Source: Paraphysomonas bandaiensis (lineage: Eukaryota; Protista; Chrysophyceae). From it: a stretch of DNA of 64,000 nt. Shown in pieces: positions 1 to 9,682 of this stretch. The DNA lies in assembly GCA_965644295.1 (NCBI GenBank), contig CBFFRP010000269.1:1-64000 (forward strand), read 5' to 3'. The first letter of the stretch is position 1. The number at the start of each line of letters is the position of its first letter. Both the position numbers and the translations under genes were made by a program. The notes under the pieces were generated by a model. The model saw only the letters and a list, made by a program, of their open reading frames with translations. It was not told where the DNA came from and did no database searches.

Positions 1-1660
1 TTAATCCCTAGGTGTGTGGTCACGACTTTCAGGTATTTTAGACACCAGTCATGGGAGGCCTTGTCTGTGATTGTGAGAGGAAGGTCTGCTCCGAGGTAAT
101 GTATCGACTCTAGTGATGTTTGGATAGGGACTGGGTGTGGACGCCACGACCAGTCGTAAGAAATGATGTAGCCAATGGGGTCGGAGGACTTGTTGGAATC
201 TTGTAGGATCGGAAACACTGTGCAAACTACTTTGGGATAGAGTTCCATTCCCGAAAGTACGCAGAACGCAGATATTTGTTGGGCAATGAGTTGGGCAGCG
301 TGTATGGATTTAGCTATTGTGTTAAGATCATCCGCGAAGGAGATCTTTATTTCGCCGGTAGTCGGAGTCGTGAGTTGAATAGTTGGTAACGTTGGGCTCG
401 TTGTTGACAGTTCAATGTCCAGCCACGTGAGAAGGATGTCGTAGAGTGCCACAGCGCACGTCGTAAGTTCTGTACTTGCTGGGTGATACCCCTTTCAGCT
501 TCGAAACCCAGACTGAATAGTGCAATGAAGAGTGGCCGTCTGCGGACAGGAAGTCAGGAGAGAACGTGGCTCTATGTTGTTTGCCATGAATGGTGTCCAG
601 GGAAATGTTAGACCGCCGGCATCTAAGTTGCCAAACCAGTCAACTACATCGTCCGGAACGCCCAGTCGTGCCACGCGAGACGCATGAGGTTAGGCGCAAT
701 TGAGTCGAAGGCCTTCTTGAAGTCCCAGAGTGTACAGATATGCTGGTCGCCTTTTCGTCTTGCTTCTTCTGCAGCCGCGAGTACCCTTAGTATCGCCATG
801 TCCGTCCCGTTCCTCCGGCGATAACCATGCTGGGACGGATCGCAAAACTTTCTGTTCCTCCCATACGGTAAGAATTCTATGAGTGATTATCCTTGTTAAT
901 ATTTTCCTACTGACTTCAAGCAGACCAATCGGTCGGAGATTAGGAGGAGGATTCTCCTGGTTTCTTGAGAATGGGAGACATTACCTGTCTCTCCACCAAA
1001 TGGGCACATGTTTATGTTTCCAGAGATCTGGTGAGGATGTAAAGCCTCTCGCTGGACTACCGGTGGCCGGGATTTGACCATTTGGAGGAGACCATTGAGG
1101 GTCCAGGCGCGCGGTTGAAGGAGAGAGAGTGAAGTGTGCAGTAGAATTCATCCTGGGTGATGTCTTTTGCAAGTAGATTTGAGTGTGGCTGCCATGGCCG
1201 GAGTGGTCTTGGTACAAAGGGCCCGTCGTAACCCCAGTTGCAGGGGAAGAGGTATTTTCGAGCGGGGGTGGAGTGGTTCCTGGCATGTCGCTGAGCCCGG
1301 ATCAAGAAGGGATTTCCACCATGTAGGGTCATCCTGGAGCTGTTGTGCTGCAGGGTCAAGTCCAGGAGGTTTGGCATGATGTTCACGGAAGTGCGCATTA
1401 ATGCCTTCATGAATGTCTTGCGGTGTTGTGAGGATGTGTCCGTCAGTTGTTTTCACCGTGGTGAGTCGGAGTGGTGTTTTGACCTTGAGACCAATTTTCT
1501 GAAGGATTGCTTGAAGTCTTTTCTGCTGTAGCAGTGCCTCCATCTGATTGGTGCGAGCCGTGAGTCTAGTCCGCATTTCTGTCCTGGCTCTTCCATGAAG
1601 AAGTCCTCTCAGTCGCAAGGCAATTCGGAGAAGGTTTTCTTGGTGGCTTGCTTTTCGTTC
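1..1660 (-). pseudogene. Frameshifted linker and reverse transcriptase region of the LINE
   Basis: RT motifs appear in order but across changing frames, for example a 1-nt shift at ~841 between WEEQKVL and DPSQHGY. The linker TTPQDIHEGINAHFREHH lies in ORF 1148-1618. Confidence 0.8.
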
Positions 1661-4600
1661 AACCCAGGATTACTCGTGGGTCCGCGTTGCGACTGGCTGC
1701 ACCGAAGTTGATGTCTGATATGCCTTTGATGTGACCCTGAGAACTCCTGAGATAGGAGTCCCATCGGACGAACCATGCAGTGATGATTTCGTGGGTGGGG
1801 GTGGTTGCCGGGGGCCGCCGCCATCCATGCCGTTTGTATCCGGCAGAATTGAACATCTTTTGGATAATCCGCAAAACCATGAGCATTCCTTCCTGTATTA
1901 CTCTCATTTCCGGGGAAAAGCCATTCTTGAACTTTGAGCGTTTGCGCTGACAACGTTCGTGTAGTCGTGTGCTATAAGTACATGCAGGACGCTTCGCTTC
2001 AAGCGAAGCCTGGAGGGTTATGTGATGGATGGCCGCTAGTCTGTTGGCTGCCACCTCAGGAGGGAGTATGGCAGACGATCCGTTGTCTAAATGTGGTAGT
2101 TGTGCATGAAGTTGGAGGAGTCTTGCGGTGTATGCCTGTACTTCCTTGGAGTCCTTCGGGTTTACATTGAGACGGGGGGGGATTCGGAGGTGCGACTCAG
2201 GTGGTCGAGGGTCAAGATTGACTGGTACAGTGAAACCGACCCAGACCGGTCGATGATCGAAGGCTGCTGCGAGTAGTGAGGGGGAGTCAAGGCAGCCAGT
2301 GTCCGTAACAGACATGTTCGGAAGTAACGGCGTGTGTAGAATATGATCGATCCGCGATATTCCTTTGTCTAATCTGTGGAAGGTATGATATGTTTTCCTG
2401 GGTAGGAGAAGCTCATGGAGTGGTGCAGCCAGTTGGAGTTTGTCGGCAAGTGGTCGTATGTCTCTGCCTTTCGGATTTGTCTCCATGGAGCCATTGAAGT
2501 CGCCGGCGACAATGACAGTATGGTCCTTGGCTCTGGCTTTAGTGACCCATTTCGTAAGGATGTTGCATAGGAGCTTGTAGGGGTCAGCAGTACAGATACC
2601 ACGGGACGCTCTCCCTAGCTTGGTCAATTTGCTCCATAATGTGCAAGAGCCTGGCGTGGATGGCTTCGGGGGTAGATAGACGCTTATTAGTACTAGGGTG
2701 TGCGCCACCGACGTTTTGAACTCTAGTCGGCTCACTAAACCAAGTCCCGTAAAGTCAGCCTTTGTGAAGGCGAGACGGCGCTTCCAGTATTCGCTGATTA
2801 TGACTACTGTACCCCCCATTAGTGGGTCTCTTGAAGTCAGTTTTGGCTGCTTGCTGAGGAAGAGGCATATTCTTGATCCCTGGATTGCATCTTCTATGAT
2901 ACGTGTGAAGAAGTTGGCCTGAGTTTCTGTTAGACGGACATCCTGTAATAGGAGCACGTCCAATTTTTGCCGCTTAAAGTGTCGGATGATAGCTTGGACT
3001 TTGCCTGTGTGAGATGCCGGATTGCCATTTGTGTTCCATGTGGAGAGTCGGAGTCCCATGGCTGCTCCCGAGGGAGCCTTGGGGATGCTGCTGGAGGTCT
3101 CTGTAGGAGTTCCACTCTTGTCTGCAAGGAGTCTGTCCCATACTGCTTTATTGGCACCGCCTATGTCGCTGTCGTACGCAGCCCTGGCTTGGATTAATAT
3201 CTCAAGTGGCCAGCGTTGATCACACCAGTAATGATGCCCGTAGTTGATGAGAAGTTCTTCATCCTTAGCAATGGGACGTATTGTACGGACATAGAGGCGT
3301 TTATTTTTCGTGACAAACTTGACATTAGCCATGTTTGTGGCTAGGGAGTCATTAATATACCCAGCTTCGCATGTTACACATTGTCGGACTTGGTCAAAGC
3401 CATCTATTGCGAAGGTACCAGTACTGTCTTGAACTATGTAATCAGAACGCCTTGCAGACTGACTCAGCTTTGTTAGTGGATAGCGTTTGCCTTTGTACTC
3501 AGCAATGATGACGTCTGCTGGGAATGTGTTCTTCGCATAAAGGGATAGTCCTTTGGCAGTGTTATCGGCGTACGCAATGTAGAACTTTCTTGACCAGTCC
3601 TTGTCCCAGCTGGTGGTATCAAGTGCTGGAGTTGGTCTGATCGTTCGTGTGGTCGTGGATTGGTGTGAGTTGTGAAGGTTCGTTGGTTGGTCACTTTCAT
3701 CGTAATTTACGACCTTTTTGGCTTTCCGGGTTGGCTGGCATCGACTTGTCAACGCAGTTTGGGCGTGTTTCAACTGCATCTTCTTGTGCGATGGTAGTGC
3801 TCCAGGGGTTGAAGCCTGCAGAATCTGTCGATTTGTTCGTGCTAACTTGGTGCTGCTGGACGAGGTTGTTCTGGTGCTGGTCGTCTTTGATGTCCTATTG
3901 TTGTTCGTGGTTGAGTCCGCGGGAAGTGTAGGTGGAGCGATGGGGTCAGACGTTGAGAGTATACTGGTGGCCAAGGTGTTTTCAAGAGATAGTAGAGCGT
4001 TGTCTAGGGCAGTAGAAAGACCGGCAGGGTCTAAGAGGAAGTAGTGAGCATCTTGTAGTATGACATGGTAGTAGTTATCACGAATAGCGTTCCTAAGTTC
4101 CTCCACCTTCCATGCGATGTTATAAGCTACTTTGTCAGTAGGGATGCCTACAATGCTGAGATAATTACCATTTTGCGCCCACGTCGTGCAGGGGTTGATA
4201 GTAGAGGCTAAAAGGTGGACCTCTCGCACTGAGAGCCAGTGAGTTATGTCGTCCTCCGTAGTGTATGTTGTTTTGGCAGGTATTAAAAGTGCGGCCTGTG
4301 CGTGATCCAACTTATGTCGTAGTGGCTGAAGTGTGTGATGGGCCATGCACTCCCGTTGCATTGTGTCGAACGCTTGGGTGCCTAATGTATTTATAAAAGA
4401 TGCTAGCGTGTGACGGTCCTTGCGTTGTTTGAGGTCTAATTTCAGACAGGAGCGAGTGTGTCGCCTGCTTGAAGCAAGAATGTGCAGATGATAGAGTGTG
4501 CTGTATGCGCAGTACCCATCACTTGGGATATGTTGTTGTGTGCGAAGGACTGAGGGTCTGAGGGTGAGGCGATAGACTCTGCTCATGTCGCACATATGGA

Positions 4601-6809
4601 GCCTGAGTTGTCGACGGTCCGTGGGGTTCATCTGCCGTAGTTGACGTCGAGCTCTCGGTGACAAGGAGACTGCAATTACTTCCCTCTGTTCCTGTTGCTC
4701 TCTTTGCTCATGTAGCATAGATGGTACAGTTGACGGTTCAGAAGTCCAGATGATGTTGGTGCTCTGTCTGGAGGTTTGGTGTTGTAGAAAACAGGATAGC
4801 CGCTCCTGAGTCCGTGTTAGAGCGTGCATGATGCAGGTGGGGATATTTGTTGCATTTAGTATGTGAAACCCATGCTGGCTGCGTATGATGTCATGGGTTA
4901 CCACAGTGTTGGTAGAAGCGTGCACTGTTAGTGCCTGTCTGGAGAATGGTGATAGCTGTGCCCAACCAGGCGCCAGGTGCGGTTGAACAGCGTCCCATAG
5001 TCTGTATGGTATGGAGAGAAGATCGAGTAGCAGTTGGAAATCCTCCGTGTCTAGATGTAGTCCTGTGTGTGGATTCGAGGATTCATATTGCATAAGTGTC
5101 TTACGGAGAGTGACAGTGGCTGTTGAGGGAATACCCTTTGTCAGGCAAAGGGTCCGCACATGCCTAGATACAACATGAGTGGAGTCTGCCCAGGGTTTGT
5201 TGCCATTCGCGAGATGCTGGGCAACTAGTAGGGCGCTGTGCGTGGTGTCCAATTTGTGCTCTGGTAGCGTGAATGATATCATGAGATCATAGTTGTCCGT
5301 CCTGGAAGCCTTGGCTATGAATCCTTCCCATATGTCTAAACAGGCAGGGGATAGCATGTGTGCGTATATTTCTTTTAAAAGGTTTCCCTGTGGGGAGGCA
5401 GCAATGGTTTGGGTTTCATCATATCTAACCCAGTTGTTCAGCAGATCGGAGTGAAAGGGCATGTGACCCCGGCCCTCTGTGTAGTGTAGGGTGTGTGTGG
5501 CAATATCCTTGGGCAGTACATCCGGCCTGAGGTCAGGAGTGGTAGTGGAGAGTGCGGATGGGCCGTCTGGGGCTAATGCTGGAGTTCCCATGGTGTTCAG
5601 TTGAGTAAGGTTGGTGGTAGGTTGCTTCCGTTTGACTGGGAAATAGTCAAATAACGTTGCATACGGTGTGGTGGCATCCTTAGTGGGTAAGGGTAATGTG
5701 TGGGTGGATTTGCTGGGTCCGTCACCGCTGTTATCGGAGGAGAATTCCTTCCCCTGAAGGGCGTGGGAGGGATGGTTGATGGACCTGGCACGGTGGACTC
5801 CTTGCATTCCGTTGGAATGACATTGCAACACATTTTGGAGACGCATGATGACGAGGTCAGGAATTCTCTCGAGTAGCGCGTGTAGTTCCAACTCCACCGG
5901 GTATTTGGTGTCCAGGAAGAAGTGATCGTTGGAGCAAAACACATCATAAGATGGAAGGAATTGAGTTTGTGGAAGGAAGGAGGAATGGTGGGTGGACCAG
6001 TACGCCCAGTAAGGGAGAGGCGATAGTTTGTCCGGGGGTTTTCTAGGAGGAGGTAGAGTGTACTGTGTGTGTGTATGACACTGCAGTGATGATATGAGTG
6101 TGTTGGACAGAGAGAGAGAGCTGGTGATGTGTCCAACAGTACAGGTAGACAGGTACATGGACATGGTGATGTGTCCAACAGTACAGGTATACAGGTACAT
6201 GGACATGGTGATGTGTCCAACAGCAGTAGAGGTATACACGGAATGGTATACATCCTGTAGGACACAGTAGTACAGTAGTCGAGTAAACCGTATGCGGAAT
6301 ACAGTGTCTATCCAATGAGCTGGATGGGCTGTGGGGGTGATAGGTGAACAGGGTGAGGGGGTAGCCTGCTGGGTGGATGGACCACAGACAAACCATGTTG
6401 GGTTGGGCTGAGTGGGCGGCAGAAGGCAGCCCTGTTGCACAGTTGAGAGGGATCGAGAGTATTCAGTGATTGCATAGGGGGTCCATGGGGGTCGTTTTCG
6501 TGAGCCTGCTCGCACGAGCCATGTTCTGAGAGGTTGTAGCCGTAGAAAGCGATGGGTGAGACGAAGTTGTCTGCTGAGGGGATAGCACGTAGGTGCGGTC
6601 AGCGCTGCATTGGTGCAGGCACGTGGTTTAACTGAAGTAGTTGAGTAGGGTGAAGGTTGCAAGGCCAGGCAGGGGGGCTTGGAGCGTGTACAACATGGTG
6701 TGACAGGTAATTTGTCGGAAGCGTGGTGGTCAACAAAATGCAGCAGTAAGGGAGTGTAAAAGGCCCTGGGCACACTGATGTGACTCAGCCACAGTCTCAA
6801 TAGAGACAT
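1659..6809 (-). CDS. Retrotransposon polyprotein, N-terminal part: low-complexity leader, OTU-like domain(s), SET domain, APE endonuclease
   Basis: Uninterrupted 1716-codon ORF. OTU-like IPSDGYCAY...HYFLL at ~4030-4532. SET motifs KGLSLYAK...IIAEYKG...AGYINDS...EELLINYGHHYW at ~3220-3560. APE at ~2230-3055. The true start codon is uncertain. Confidence 0.85.
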   Translation of the reverse strand: MSLLRLWLSHISVPRAFYTPLLLHFVDHHASDKLPVTPCCTRSKPPCLALQPSPYSTTSVKPRACTNAALTAPTCYPLSRQLRLTHRFLRLQPLRTWLVRAGSRKRPPWTPYAITEYSRSLSTVQQGCLLPPTQPNPTWFVCGPSTQQATPSPCSPITPTAHPAHWIDTVFRIRFTRLLYYCVLQDVYHSVYTSTAVGHITMSMYLYTCTVGHITMSMYLSTCTVGHITSSLSLSNTLISSLQCHTHTQYTLPPPRKPPDKLSPLPYWAYWSTHHSSFLPQTQFLPSYDVFCSNDHFFLDTKYPVELELHALLERIPDLVIMRLQNVLQCHSNGMQGVHRARSINHPSHALQGKEFSSDNSGDGPSKSTHTLPLPTKDATTPYATLFDYFPVKRKQPTTNLTQLNTMGTPALAPDGPSALSTTTPDLRPDVLPKDIATHTLHYTEGRGHMPFHSDLLNNWVRYDETQTIAASPQGNLLKEIYAHMLSPACLDIWEGFIAKASRTDNYDLMISFTLPEHKLDTTHSALLVAQHLANGNKPWADSTHVVSRHVRTLCLTKGIPSTATVTLRKTLMQYESSNPHTGLHLDTEDFQLLLDLLSIPYRLWDAVQPHLAPGWAQLSPFSRQALTVHASTNTVVTHDIIRSQHGFHILNATNIPTCIMHALTRTQERLSCFLQHQTSRQSTNIIWTSEPSTVPSMLHEQREQQEQREVIAVSLSPRARRQLRQMNPTDRRQLRLHMCDMSRVYRLTLRPSVLRTQQHIPSDGYCAYSTLYHLHILASSRRHTRSCLKLDLKQRKDRHTLASFINTLGTQAFDTMQRECMAHHTLQPLRHKLDHAQAALLIPAKTTYTTEDDITHWLSVREVHLLASTINPCTTWAQNGNYLSIVGIPTDKVAYNIAWKVEELRNAIRDNYYHVILQDAHYFLLDPAGLSTALDNALLSLENTLATSILSTSDPIAPPTLPADSTTNNNRTSKTTSTRTTSSSSTKLARTNRQILQASTPGALPSHKKMQLKHAQTALTSRCQPTRKAKKVVNYDESDQPTNLHNSHQSTTTRTIRPTPALDTTSWDKDWSRKFYIAYADNTAKGLSLYAKNTFPADVIIAEYKGKRYPLTKLSQSARRSDYIVQDSTGTFAIDGFDQVRQCVTCEAGYINDSLATNMANVKFVTKNKRLYVRTIRPIAKDEELLINYGHHYWCDQRWPLEILIQARAAYDSDIGGANKAVWDRLLADKSGTPTETSSSIPKAPSGAAMGLRLSTWNTNGNPASHTGKVQAIIRHFKRQKLDVLLLQDVRLTETQANFFTRIIEDAIQGSRICLFLSKQPKLTSRDPLMGGTVVIISEYWKRRLAFTKADFTGLGLVSRLEFKTSVAHTLVLISVYLPPKPSTPGSCTLWSKLTKLGRASRGICTADPYKLLCNILTKWVTKARAKDHTVIVAGDFNGSMETNPKGRDIRPLADKLQLAAPLHELLLPRKTYHTFHRLDKGISRIDHILHTPLLPNMSVTDTGCLDSPSLLAAAFDHRPVWVGFTVPVNLDPRPPESHLRIPPRLNVNPKDSKEVQAYTARLLQLHAQLPHLDNGSSAILPPEVAANRLAAIHHITLQASLEAKRPACTYSTRLHERCQRKRSKFKNGFSPEMRVIQEGMLMVLRIIQKMFNSAGYKRHGWRRPPATTPTHEIITAWFVRWDSYLRSSQGHIKGISDINFGAASRNADPRVILG
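6122..6224. repeat. 42-bp tandem repeat (~2.5 copies) in the LINE 5' region
   Basis: Unit TGGTGATGTGTCCAACAGTACAGGTAKACAGGTACATGGACA, translated as repeated TCTVGHITMSMYL. Confidence 0.9.
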
Positions 6810-6828
6810 TGGGTTTGGAGCTGGTTAA

Positions 6829-7390
6829 TAGAGTGAAACTTTATGTTGGACTGTATTTGCCATCGTAGGGCAGAGAATTTTTTCAATTATGAATGTATTG
6901 TTGAGATTTGCAGTTTGTGAGCAATTAGAAGCCGTAGTTATAAGGTATTTAAATTATAACCGTTACTAAGTGTATACAGTAGTGATGAGATGTATTATGA
7001 AAGTGTTATCATGACGATGTGTTCAGTTTTATCTATATTCTTAAGATGTCAAATCTTGACATGTATGACTATACAAGACATTGTGCTATATGACATTATG
7101 ACATTGTATCATCATGAGTGTATGATATATGGTATATGGATAAAAGGGTGGATGATTTGCAAAGCATATTTGGTTTTATTTGTCGGAAGTGTATATCCAA
7201 GATTTAAGCATATTTTGTGCGCTACAAACAAGGAAGTGTAAGGTTTGCGTAGTTGTTGTTGGAGGTTAAGTAGCCAGTTAAAAGTTTAAACTTCCTATAT
7301 ACGACCTTTAACATGTGTTCACTCTCAGCAACTGAGAGGAGACAAGGCAACCTTCCGCAGCAATTGATAATTAATCGTTACGCAGCCCTG
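6829..7390. mobile_element. Probable hAT-type MITE interrupted by a solo LTR
   Basis: The right end (revcomp CAGGGCTGCGTAACGATTAATT) matches the MITE end at 21208. Flanks CTGGTTAA (6821-6828) and CTGATTAA (7391-7398) match at 7/8, consistent with an 8-bp TSD. The left terminus is degenerate. Confidence 0.45.
6899..7313 (+). mobile_element. Solo LTR
   Basis: TGTTGA...TTAACA termini with flanks TGTAT and TGTGT (4/5 TSD). Shares GAGCAATT...GTAGTTATAAGGTATTTAAATTA with the PBS-linked LTR at 22275-22593. Confidence 0.7.
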
Positions 7391-7609: not shown

Positions 7610-9682
7610 CTATCTACTGTATGCCGCTACAGGCGCACTGTATATTGAGCTAAATATATTCTTTTTCTTGGGTTGTTTGTTACTACTCTTCACTTGAGCC
7701 TCAGGTTGCTTCTCCTGGGTATTTTGATTTGCTTCATTTTGTACACCACTATCCACACCAGTTTCTGCATTACATCTTCGGATCCATTTCGTAAGGTCCT
7801 TTCCAGGAACTCTAATTAATGCTCCAGCATTTATGACATTGTTACGTATGGGATTATCGGAAATAATGTTGGTCTTCAAAACATCAACAACGAAACTAGA
7901 CGAGGCCTTATTGCGGTCACCTACATATACAGCATCTCATAAACGTATATAATACAGTTTGTAGTTACATGCTATATGAGACAGATCTTACCTAACACTA
8001 TAAGGATATCTGGTATAGTTGCTGGGGATTCTTTTCTAATTTGGGATAACAGCGACCGAATAATGGCCCTCATCATGGGTTTCGAGCACTCACGAAGGTC
8101 CAGTCTTCTGTCATCGTCCAAGTTAATAGCTGTAGTGAACACACCGTTGCGCTTGCCTAAAATCTCATGTAAAAATATATATATATACATGTATCGCATG
8201 AGCAAACCTGTGTCATACAGCTCCTGCGCGGCCTCGTACATTTCATCGCCATCTAATGCATGTATTGCTTGTACAACTGCAAATTGGCTGACCTTAATGT
8301 GTCTCTTGGCCATTTCCCGCAATAATGTCAGGGCGCGCATACCATAACCTCGAGAATTCTCGGACGCCGCAGCTAATGCTTTTAAGGCTGCAGTGTACAA
8401 AGGAGCATCTAGAAGCCCATGTGATGATGATATGAATTCATCGAATAGCTCCAAAGACTTCAGTGGCTGTCCACCATTGGTATATGCCCCCATCGCTGAT
8501 GTGCACATTTGGTTGTTGAACTTAACCCCCCTTTTACTACAGGCTTGCTTCACAAGCTCTGCCGCCAGAATGTAATCGCCAGCTTTGTCGCAGCAAGTTA
8601 ACATTGCACCGAATGTTAATGTATCACGCTTCACCTAATTACACAACAACGGGTAACTCAACATTTTCCATACATTGACAGCGTCATGATATGGTATACT
8701 GCCCATGCAAATACAGCACTATGTAGTAATATTATACTGCATAACGTGACAACCAGGTGCATTTACACGTCGCTTAGTCTTTAGTAGTACATACCTTATT
8801 AAGTTGCATACTTTCAAATATATCGTACGCCTTCGAGTACTTTTTCAAATAACAACACGAGGTAATAGCGGCATTATAACACGCAGTATCTAGTCTTGCT
8901 CTCTGGTCGACAGCTTCCTGAAAAACATGGAGCGCATCGGCATGTCTCGACGACTTTGCGCAGGCTGTCATCGTCGCAGTAATTACTACAGGGTTGAACG
9001 GGAGTCGGGATGCTTGCATTGATTCTAACAACTCCAGAGCGCGCTCCCAACGACCTCCTCGAGCACAAGCCGAAATCGCTGCTGAGTAGTGGTATGCTGT
9101 AGGAGTTTTGCGAATATTTTTACTTTTTCCTATGAGGTCAAACACTTCTAAGGCTCTATCTACGTCACCCGCCTTACTAAATGTTTGGATGATTGTAGCC
9201 ACCACACTACTCTTCAGAAGAGTACGCGATTTCAAACGTTTTTCGGCTTCATCAATTGCGAGAGAAAAATCCCTAGACTTTTCGCTTGCCACAAGCAATT
9301 CTTTGAGGTTCTCATATTCTTCACTCTTCTTGTTCTTACGTCCACTTTTCTTTCCGAGAGATGAAGGACCTTTCTTTTCAAGTGAATTGGGTTTGAGTGT
9401 ACCACACTTGAAACACTGTTTTCTCCAAGCAAAAGAGAGAACACCACATCCAGGACATGTCCAATCCCCTTCTCTGATGTCACTTAGCAGCGCAAGTTTG
9501 CTCTTGTTCTCATTACTAGTGAGATTACTCCCATCTGAGGTGACACAGAGACATCGTTGGCTTATACCCGTGTATAGAGGGGATCGTGGAAGGTAATCAA
9601 GGGATGAAACTAAGCTGAAAGGAGAACATAATTGAGTTTTGTTCAATTTAGAGACTATTTTCCAGGCACGGTTAATATACAT
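7610..9682 (-). CDS. PPR protein with an N-terminal RanBP2-type zinc finger and a probable C-terminal Smr-like domain (multi-exon)
   Basis: Zinc finger GDWTCPGCGVLSFAWRKQCFKCGTLKP. PPR repeats include YSAAISACARGGRWERALELLESM and YNAAITSC. The C-terminus LDLREC...ILIVLG...NAGAL resembles Smr. The N-terminus is basic and Ser-rich, like a targeting peptide. Confidence 0.85.

Follow-up and report, generated by a model that had tools for sequence, protein, structure and literature searches.

Can a retrotransposon carry, in one reading frame with its endonuclease and reverse transcriptase, a domain of the kind that writes marks on chromatin? This question is raised by a 64,000-nucleotide stretch of DNA from the chrysophyte Paraphysomonas bandaiensis (GenBank assembly GCA_965644295.1, contig CBFFRP010000269.1, here C269; positions 1 to 64,000 of the forward strand), referred to below as the window. 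At its very start, on the minus strand of positions 1-6889, the window contains the 5′ three quarters of a non-LTR retrotransposon (LTR, long terminal repeat), and within this copy a SET domain is joined in frame to an apurinic/apyrimidinic-type endonuclease (APE). An earlier, sequence-only reading of the window had proposed a long interspersed nuclear element (LINE) whose polyprotein carries both a SET methyltransferase and an OTU-like protease upstream of APE and the reverse transcriptase (RT). The element belongs to a real LINE family with an in-frame SET domain under selection and two protease-like modules, and as such it is a variation on known themes.

The LINE Family and Its Mobility

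An intact copy on contig C440 sets the length of the element at ~9.36 kb, beginning with AAATTCTCTGCCC and ending with CATTCACTAC; a terminal-repeat check found no poly(A) tail, LTRs, or terminal inverted repeats (TIRs). At least 52 protein-level matches are present in the 62.5-Mb genome (669 contigs), most of them 96-100% identical, and intact frames of 3021, 2823, and 2795 aa were found on C440, C433, and C143, respectively. Pfam matches to SET, APE, and RVT_1 follow one another in that order in all three, and in this way the tBLASTn-type check for further copies that had been called for bore out the proposed order of SET, APE, and RT. From end to end, the intact protein (3016 aa) comprises a variable N-terminus, a motif region, protease-like module 1 (aa ~455-705), protease-like module 2 (aa 742-950), a linker, SET, APE, RT, RNase H, a CCHC knuckle (C-x2-C-x8-H-x4-C), and a helical C-terminal domain. 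A stretch of ~450 aa separates APE from RT, which occupies aa 1951-2244 (RVT_1, E 1.1e-14) and has its FADD motif at aa 2161. Residues D48, E113, D136, H183, and D205 of RNase H are invariant in an alignment of four lineages, and the predicted structure of this domain matches retroviral, human, and bacterial RNase H in Foldseek, with TM scores by target of 0.48-0.62.

The mode of integration is recorded in the flanking sequences. The C440 copy is bounded by a perfect 13-bp target-site duplication, and 11 of 12 further copies carry duplications of 9-13 bp that are unrelated in sequence and mostly begin with T; likewise, the flanks of sister copies are unrelated to one another. A 300-base probe from the 3′ end returned 2485 first-look candidates in the genome, as opposed to 145 for a 5′ probe, and this excess of 3′ ends, together with a 179-bp 3′ fragment of the element near C433, reflects the 5′-truncation pattern typical of LINEs. 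Internally deleted derivatives are also present, in several copies each of two classes. In one (~1.5 kb), element bases 1-1174 are joined to 9008-9356 (e.g., C199:340845-342358), and in the other (~2.1 kb), bases 1-1742 are joined to 9012-9356; protein P0003 is the product of one such derivative. Because the deleted derivatives each possess their own target-site duplication, they are non-autonomous elements mobilized in trans.

Duplications of variable length, the lack of LTRs and TIRs, and the surplus of 3′ ends are all features of LINEs, and the placement of APE N-terminal to an RT with an F/YxDD motif, within one open reading frame (ORF), is that of the APE type. Among solved structures only, the RT sequence is nearer to that of L1 ORF2p (E 1.5e-9) than to that of R2 (6.5e-4), a comparison that implies no clade assignment. 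The window opens within a young copy of an autonomous LINE of the APE type, one that integrates by target-primed reverse transcription, and the family seems to be young and still moving.

The Copy in the Window

The longest open frame of the window copy spans positions 1659..6809 of the minus strand (1716 aa) and passes, exactly as had been claimed, through a Cys/His module, a Thr/Ser/basic linker, and SET into APE. All of the motif strings quoted in support were located in this frame, with IPSDGYCAY at aa 761-769, AHYFLL at aa 921-926, and WLSVREVHLLA also present. The extent originally assigned to the element, 1-6809, holds for the single open frame up to 6809 and falls short of the element itself, the 5′ end of which lies at ~6887-6889; similarity to the intact C440 copy reaches 6889, and the segment that precedes the long frame’s first ATG (6810..6889, minus strand, as for all features of the element given below) has the same start in sister copies. 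Since the window begins at the start of the contig, the element is truncated at window base 1. RNase H, the CCHC knuckle, and the 3′ end are consequently absent from this copy, the contig ending near aa 2273 of ~3016.

RT sequence does follow on the same strand, as proposed, but in shifted frames below 1659. The tblastn comparison with the intact protein, in which RVT_1 is matched, traces it on the minus strand down to window base 3, positions 1025-3 corresponding to aa 1931-2273, and the RT portion proper is assigned to 1..971. Between RT and APE, the interdomain region (972..2327) is collinear with aa 1495-1950 of the C440 protein; the long frame stops within it, at 1659, and single-base insertions and deletions (indels) relative to C440 begin there as well, at 1703. 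Overall, the window copy differs from C440 at 82 sites over ~6900 aligned bases. Of the 19 small indels, 17 are confined to the stretch up to base 1703, adjoining the contig start, and the other two fall at the 5′ junction (6882-6900). The bunching of indels in the 1.7 kb beside the contig start points less to decay than to assembly or polishing error (i.e., a poor consensus) at a contig end bounded by a repeat.

The SET Domain

The SET domain (3237..3551; aa 1087-1191) matches PF00856 over profile positions 1-105 of 105, with an E value of 4.7e-10 and a score of 40.3 bits (cut-off, 22.4), and contains the motifs GLSLYAK, AEYKG, YINDS, and ELLINYG. In the three intact copies, the corresponding scores are 34.6-35.7 bits. 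Downstream in the same frame, APE (2328..3041; aa 1257-1494) matches PF03372 with an E value of 1.5e-9. The proposal of a SET domain fused in frame to APE is thereby upheld by a full-length profile match. The domain is of the minimal type, lacking pre-SET and post-SET cysteine clusters; its alignment with those of KMT2D and KMT2C (E ~1e-3) runs over the whole domain, and it also matches chlorovirus vSET and PRDM1.

Whether this domain is an active methyltransferase is less clear. The Asn that contacts S-adenosylmethionine (SAM) and the Tyr of the ELxxxY motif (ELLINY) are invariant, and catalysis is plausible on this basis but not assured. Two substitutions weigh against it: in all three readable lineages, Asp (YINDS or YINDP) stands in place of the NHxC His, and in the P0001/L037 lineage, Cys occupies the position of the EYxG Tyr. 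In addition, the second Gly of the GxG motif is Ser or Ala. The NHxC His matters for activity in SUV39H1 and SET7/9, and the NH-to-ND change therefore makes the activity of the element’s domain uncertain; judged by these residues, it may be inactive or atypical.

Further matches to the SET profile occur in other long frames of the genome, of 1526 aa (eight copies listed), 1947, 2062, 2479, and 3731 aa, at places that include C476:5077-5394, C644:7658-7972, C426:353403-353717, C32:122061-122375, and C119:140077-140379. These frames probably represent additional SET-bearing mobile elements of the genome. The same profile search also encountered a tandem array on C505, the period of which is 2178 bp.

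Conservation and Selection

A single LINE copy beside a SET sequence could be a one-off, and the relatives of the element are informative in this regard. The order of domains is kept in the C143 subfamily, the protein of which is 64% identical, and in marine metagenome relatives of ~42% identity that come from two other samples. SET is present in every intact copy and in relatives L024 (ENA ERZ27288152; 42% identity), L039 (ENA ERZ17294217), and L037 (PBSN01000010.1). The last of these, a 7.3-kb contig (GCA_002726235.1) that carries the modules, SET, APE, and RT, is filed under a Nitrospiraceae bacterium metagenome-assembled genome (MAG), and it is evidently a eukaryotic contig mis-binned in a bacterial MAG. 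In JGI metagenome contigs, two scans turned up an unrelated 150-aa SET gene on AT-rich contigs but no relative, and a search with the SET domain alone against proteins of similar length gave no match.

Between the two genomic subfamilies, the proportions of nonsynonymous (pN) and synonymous (pS) differences are 0.196 and 0.636 for SET, 0.203 and 0.788 for module 2, 0.164 and 0.761 for APE, and 0.153 and 0.778 for RT. Synonymous sites are saturated at this distance, and pN is low and similar across domains. Among young subfamilies, which are ~4% apart synonymously, pN/pS is 0.32 overall and 0.12-0.15 in module 2, with SET counts too few to interpret. The constraint on SET and module 2 equals that on APE and RT, and both are therefore functioning components of this LINE. 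With the order conserved across diverged lineages and purifying selection in every domain, the architecture is not a one-off fusion of a host gene with a LINE; the prospect that other copies would lack the extra domains, which would have undone the original proposal, did not materialize, and the domains are family-wide.

A stand-alone SET gene of 150 aa was also noted on CEUR01074138.1 (2061-2513, plus strand) and on another AT-rich marine contig. Its protein has an NYGHEYW ending in common with the element’s SET but a canonical NHS motif, and it is an unrelated gene that may be viral or from another protist.

The Protease-like Modules

The single OTU-like protease of the sequence-only reading turned out to be the second of two related modules, the first of which lacks the Cys in the window family. 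Module 2 (3960..4586) has its Cys in DGYC (4509-4520) and its His residues in HVILQD/AHYFLL (4032-4067), and Cys and His are conserved in every relative whose sequence covers them. Module 1 (4695..5447; pN 0.31, pS 0.70) can be aligned both to module 2 and to its counterpart in relative P0001. It is a degenerate or diverged paralogue that has lost the Cys and kept the His, in QHGFHIL; the P0001 module 1 still has GFC...SHYFLL.

As a statement about sequence families, the OTU label failed, and as a statement about fold, it is probable. On the structural side, an AlphaFold2 model of module 2 (pTM 0.69) places Cys26 in the first turn of a helix, at its N-terminus, and His181 at the start of the C-terminal strand, with Gly and an aromatic residue ahead of the Cys. 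When the model was searched against PDB with Foldseek, ~46 of the top 50 rows were OTU deubiquitinases, the best of them weak (E 0.056). VIA-align gave Z scores of 5.9-6.0 for OTU deubiquitinases, with 130-148 residues aligned at a root-mean-square deviation of ~4 Å, and in an unbiased pass over 48,161 PDB representatives, the sole whole-domain matches were OTU enzymes, others of equal Z spanning 50-80 helical residues. A fold search of predicted Atlas structures returned weak matches, and in a language-model search, 17 of 30 neighbour clusters fell in the OTU-containing set.

Several results count against an OTU protease. With Pfam hits admitted up to an E value of 10, neither module 2 nor any of the eight aligned members matched PF02338 (OTU), and a six-frame search of the genome with PF02338 recovered 10 host genes, none within the element. 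Comparison by hhalign with five host OTU domains aligned 17 columns at the Cys box alone (E 0.2), and an exhaustive phmmer search of aa 270-970 against 1.84 billion proteins returned five fragments of the same family and nothing else. The model itself is shallow, having been built from eight sequences with a pLDDT of 67.6, and a Z of ~6 is no higher than that for unrelated helical matches. Finally, no 2A-like (NPGP) or LRGG-like cleavage site was found in the sequence. More broadly, Pfam matched nothing in the N-terminal 700 aa, the modules, or the C-terminal tail. On balance, an OTU-type papain-like fold is predicted for module 2 with good, though not high, confidence, and protease activity with somewhat less; the label is a probable fold assignment, not family membership. 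The modules constitute a sequence-orphan family that, if the model is correct, may extend the OTU fold.

Possible Roles and Competing Explanations

The explanation favoured overall, and considered on balance probable, is that of an autonomous LINE in which SET acts on a chromatin lysine and module 2 is an OTU-type protease. Lying 65 residues upstream of a nuclease that engages target chromatin, SET would most likely act there during or after integration; its target would be a lysine of a histone or other chromatin protein, which it would methylate or at least grip. Integration or repair could be favoured in this way, or a chromatin state conferred on the newly inserted copy. As a papain-like cysteine protease with an OTU-type fold, module 2 might strip ubiquitin-like modifiers from the element’s own protein or from one involved in chromatin or repair, or it might alternatively cleave the polyprotein. 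It is tempting to go further and envision a LINE with its own chromatin toolkit, in which an active SET marks nucleosomes at the nick or new copy, an OTU-type deubiquitinase strips ubiquitin, and the element sets its own epigenetic state; this complete picture is doubtful, and a chromatin writer and eraser mechanism is something that we infer from sequence. No less doubtful is the idea that SET is a catalytically dead binding module that tethers the endonuclease and RT to a particular chromatin state, thereby targeting integration, a service that chromodomains provide to chromoviruses. The loss of the NHxC His in all three lineages, of the EYxG Tyr in one, and of the second Gly of GxG is what such a module might display, and purifying selection on SET fits binding as well as catalysis. 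Yet the SAM-contacting Asn, the ELxxxY Tyr, and the full 105-position core have been kept, the target-site duplications have no sequence in common, and diversity was also seen in the flanks examined.

For module 2, it is possible, though not probable, that the protease acts in cis alone, cutting the polyprotein and having no role in ubiquitin or chromatin biology. Papain-like and OTU-fold proteases cut the polyproteins of RNA viruses, the top structural neighbours of module 2 are viral OTU proteases, and a single polyprotein of ~3000 aa with long, poorly conserved linkers, in which constraint among young copies is strongest in module 2, would suit this role. The linkers, however, contain no conserved cleavage motif and no LRGG-like site, this role does not explain why the module was duplicated and the first Cys lost, and both L1 ORF2p and R2 function as uncleaved multidomain proteins. 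A more radical view, which is improbable, holds that the modules are not proteases at all but a family-specific structural or nucleic-acid- or protein-binding domain, and that the OTU-like model over-interprets a shallow alignment. The lack of Pfam, phmmer, or hhalign similarity to any protease, the modest structural scores (Z at most 6, a best Foldseek E of 0.056, and a weak Atlas-structure search), and the conservation of module 1 despite its lost Cys all lean in this direction. The arrangement of Gly and an aromatic residue before a Cys at a helix start, with a His and an aromatic residue at the start of the C-terminal strand, argues otherwise, as does the restriction of whole-domain matches and of most top Foldseek rows to OTU enzymes. 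By comparison with these alternatives, an accidental SET-APE junction, produced by a neighbouring host SET gene, a chimeric assembly, or a single recent fusion, is so improbable as to be negligible. Apart from the position of the window copy at a contig end with clustered indels, nothing beyond prior expectation speaks for it, and dozens of copies on different contigs share the junction, each with its own target-site duplication. The same order recurs in the 64%-identical subfamily and in independent metagenome assemblies, and the junction is under purifying selection. Host-gene fusion and assembly chimera were rejected on these grounds.

Relation to Known Mobile Elements

Transposons are known to borrow epigenetic readers and writers, including chromodomains, DNA methyltransferases, TET enzymes, and, in DNA transposons, SET domains. 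The original claim of novelty survives in a narrower form: no described LINE with SET was found, and SET is already known from DNA transposons and deubiquitinase-type proteases from several transposon groups. The negative part of this statement applies to the full-text literature searched, outside of which lie Repbase Reports and many subscription papers, and absence is accordingly unproven.

The closest precedent for SET comes from Phytophthora, where genes for SET histone methyltransferases are reported in HarbingerS and MuDR DNA transposons (Kojima and Jurka 2014, cited in PMC12730594). These cases have in common with the present one the uptake of SET by a transposable element of a stramenopile-type protist. 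They differ, by description only, in being cut-and-paste DNA transposons, whereas SET is here in frame with APE and RT. Other retrotransposons carry writers that modify DNA. DNA methyltransferases (DNMTs) are described in retrotransposons (PMC5890265), among them carriers from dinoflagellates and charophytes, and adenine methyltransferases in others (bioRxiv 10.64898/2026.05.21.726589), among them LTR and DIRS elements. The likeness is that of an epigenetic writer carried by retroelements of unicellular eukaryotes, and the difference is one of substrate, since theirs modify DNA and a SET domain modifies protein lysines.

Proteases provide a second line of comparison. Dualen/RandI LINEs encode a Josephin-like cysteine protease of the deubiquitinase family (Kojima and Fujiwara 2005, cited in PMC8557442 and PMC4640811). 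As summarized in the citing passages, Dualen resembles the element in combining APE, RT, RNase H, and a deubiquitinase-family cysteine protease in one long ORF, and differs from it in that a second endonuclease, of the restriction-like kind, follows the CCHC motif and in that its protease is Josephin-like. The element, in comparison with what those passages describe, has N-terminal protease modules, a predicted OTU-like fold, and SET. By motif inspection only, no invariant PD-(D/E)xK pattern was found in the ~130 residues after CCHC, and membership in Dualen/RandI was rejected for lack of this motif. NeSL and Utopia non-LTR elements possess an N-terminal Ulp1-like protease (PMC4640811), and they are similar insofar as a cysteine protease of the ubiquitin-like-modifier type lies at the N-terminus of a LINE; theirs, however, are site-specific elements with a restriction-like endonuclease and no SET. 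OTU or Ulp1 domains also occur in Ginger1, Helitron, and Mutator DNA transposons (PMC2836005). Ginger1 and Helitron are comparable in bringing an OTU-type protease (pfam02338, PMC2836005) to a mobile element, but they are DNA transposons that match the Pfam OTU profile, which module 2 does not.

Like human L1 ORF2p, which has the nearest solved RT by sequence, the element encodes APE, then RT, then a C-terminal Cys/His motif; in contrast, its protein is ~2.4 times longer, with RNase H, SET, and the protease-like modules, and unlike LINE-1, it has no ORF1 that could be seen and no poly(A) tail. Within the literature searched, then, a domain of the histone-writer type in frame with a LINE endonuclease and RT represents an arrangement for which no description was found. 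A selected SET in a young LINE, in an organism widespread in marine samples, offers a system for studying how a retrotransposon sets, exploits, or evades histone methylation. A natural fusion such as this, joining a chromatin modifier to a programmable-insertion enzyme, has practical interest as well.

Occurrence and RNA Data

Near-identical sequence was found in runs from 13 studies, mostly marine or seawater metagenomes and including poly(A)-selected metatranscriptomes. In contigs from RNA libraries, the 5′ 1.7 kb is deeply covered, and pieces of module 2, SET, and APE are thinly represented. Contigs of this kind are no proof of transcription, a point that tells against reading too much into them; as sequences, they are compatible with transcription of the element, and the 5′ depth may derive from the deletion derivatives.

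Other Features of the Element and Window

The linker between module 2 and SET (3552..3959), rich in Thr, Ser, and basic residues, is poorly conserved (20-50% identity to C143), with the exception of the motif R.QP.RKA (3714-3737), in which alignment columns R284, Q286, P287, R289, K290, and A291 are invariant. The motif lies ~55 residues upstream of SET and is kept in three lineages. It might serve as a nuclear localisation signal, or as a pseudo-substrate that offers a lysine to SET.

Upstream of the modules, the conserved N-terminal region (5448..6014) is 44-62% identical to its counterpart in subfamily C143 (pN 0.34, pS 0.72); it had no Pfam match, and a language-model search gave nothing usable. 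Two motifs within it, SDNSGDGP (5715-5738) and LFDYFP (5637-5654), are kept in all lineages seen, including relatives P0001 and P0006. The x-x-L-x-D-Y/F-F pattern of the latter resembles a PIP box, the PCNA-interacting motif, without its Gln.

The first ~265 codons of the long frame form a variable block rich in Pro, Thr, Ser, and Leu (6015..6809), which is unalignable to subfamilies C143 and C433 before aa ~266 and is swapped out entirely in other subfamilies. Because no conserved Met is found downstream of the block, translation probably starts within it. The block includes a 42-bp tandem repeat (6122-6223), present in 2.4 copies here and in three in L054, that resembles the monomer repeats in the 5′ regions of some LINEs. 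Beyond the element, the remainder of the window is ordinary host DNA, AT-richer and with host genes.

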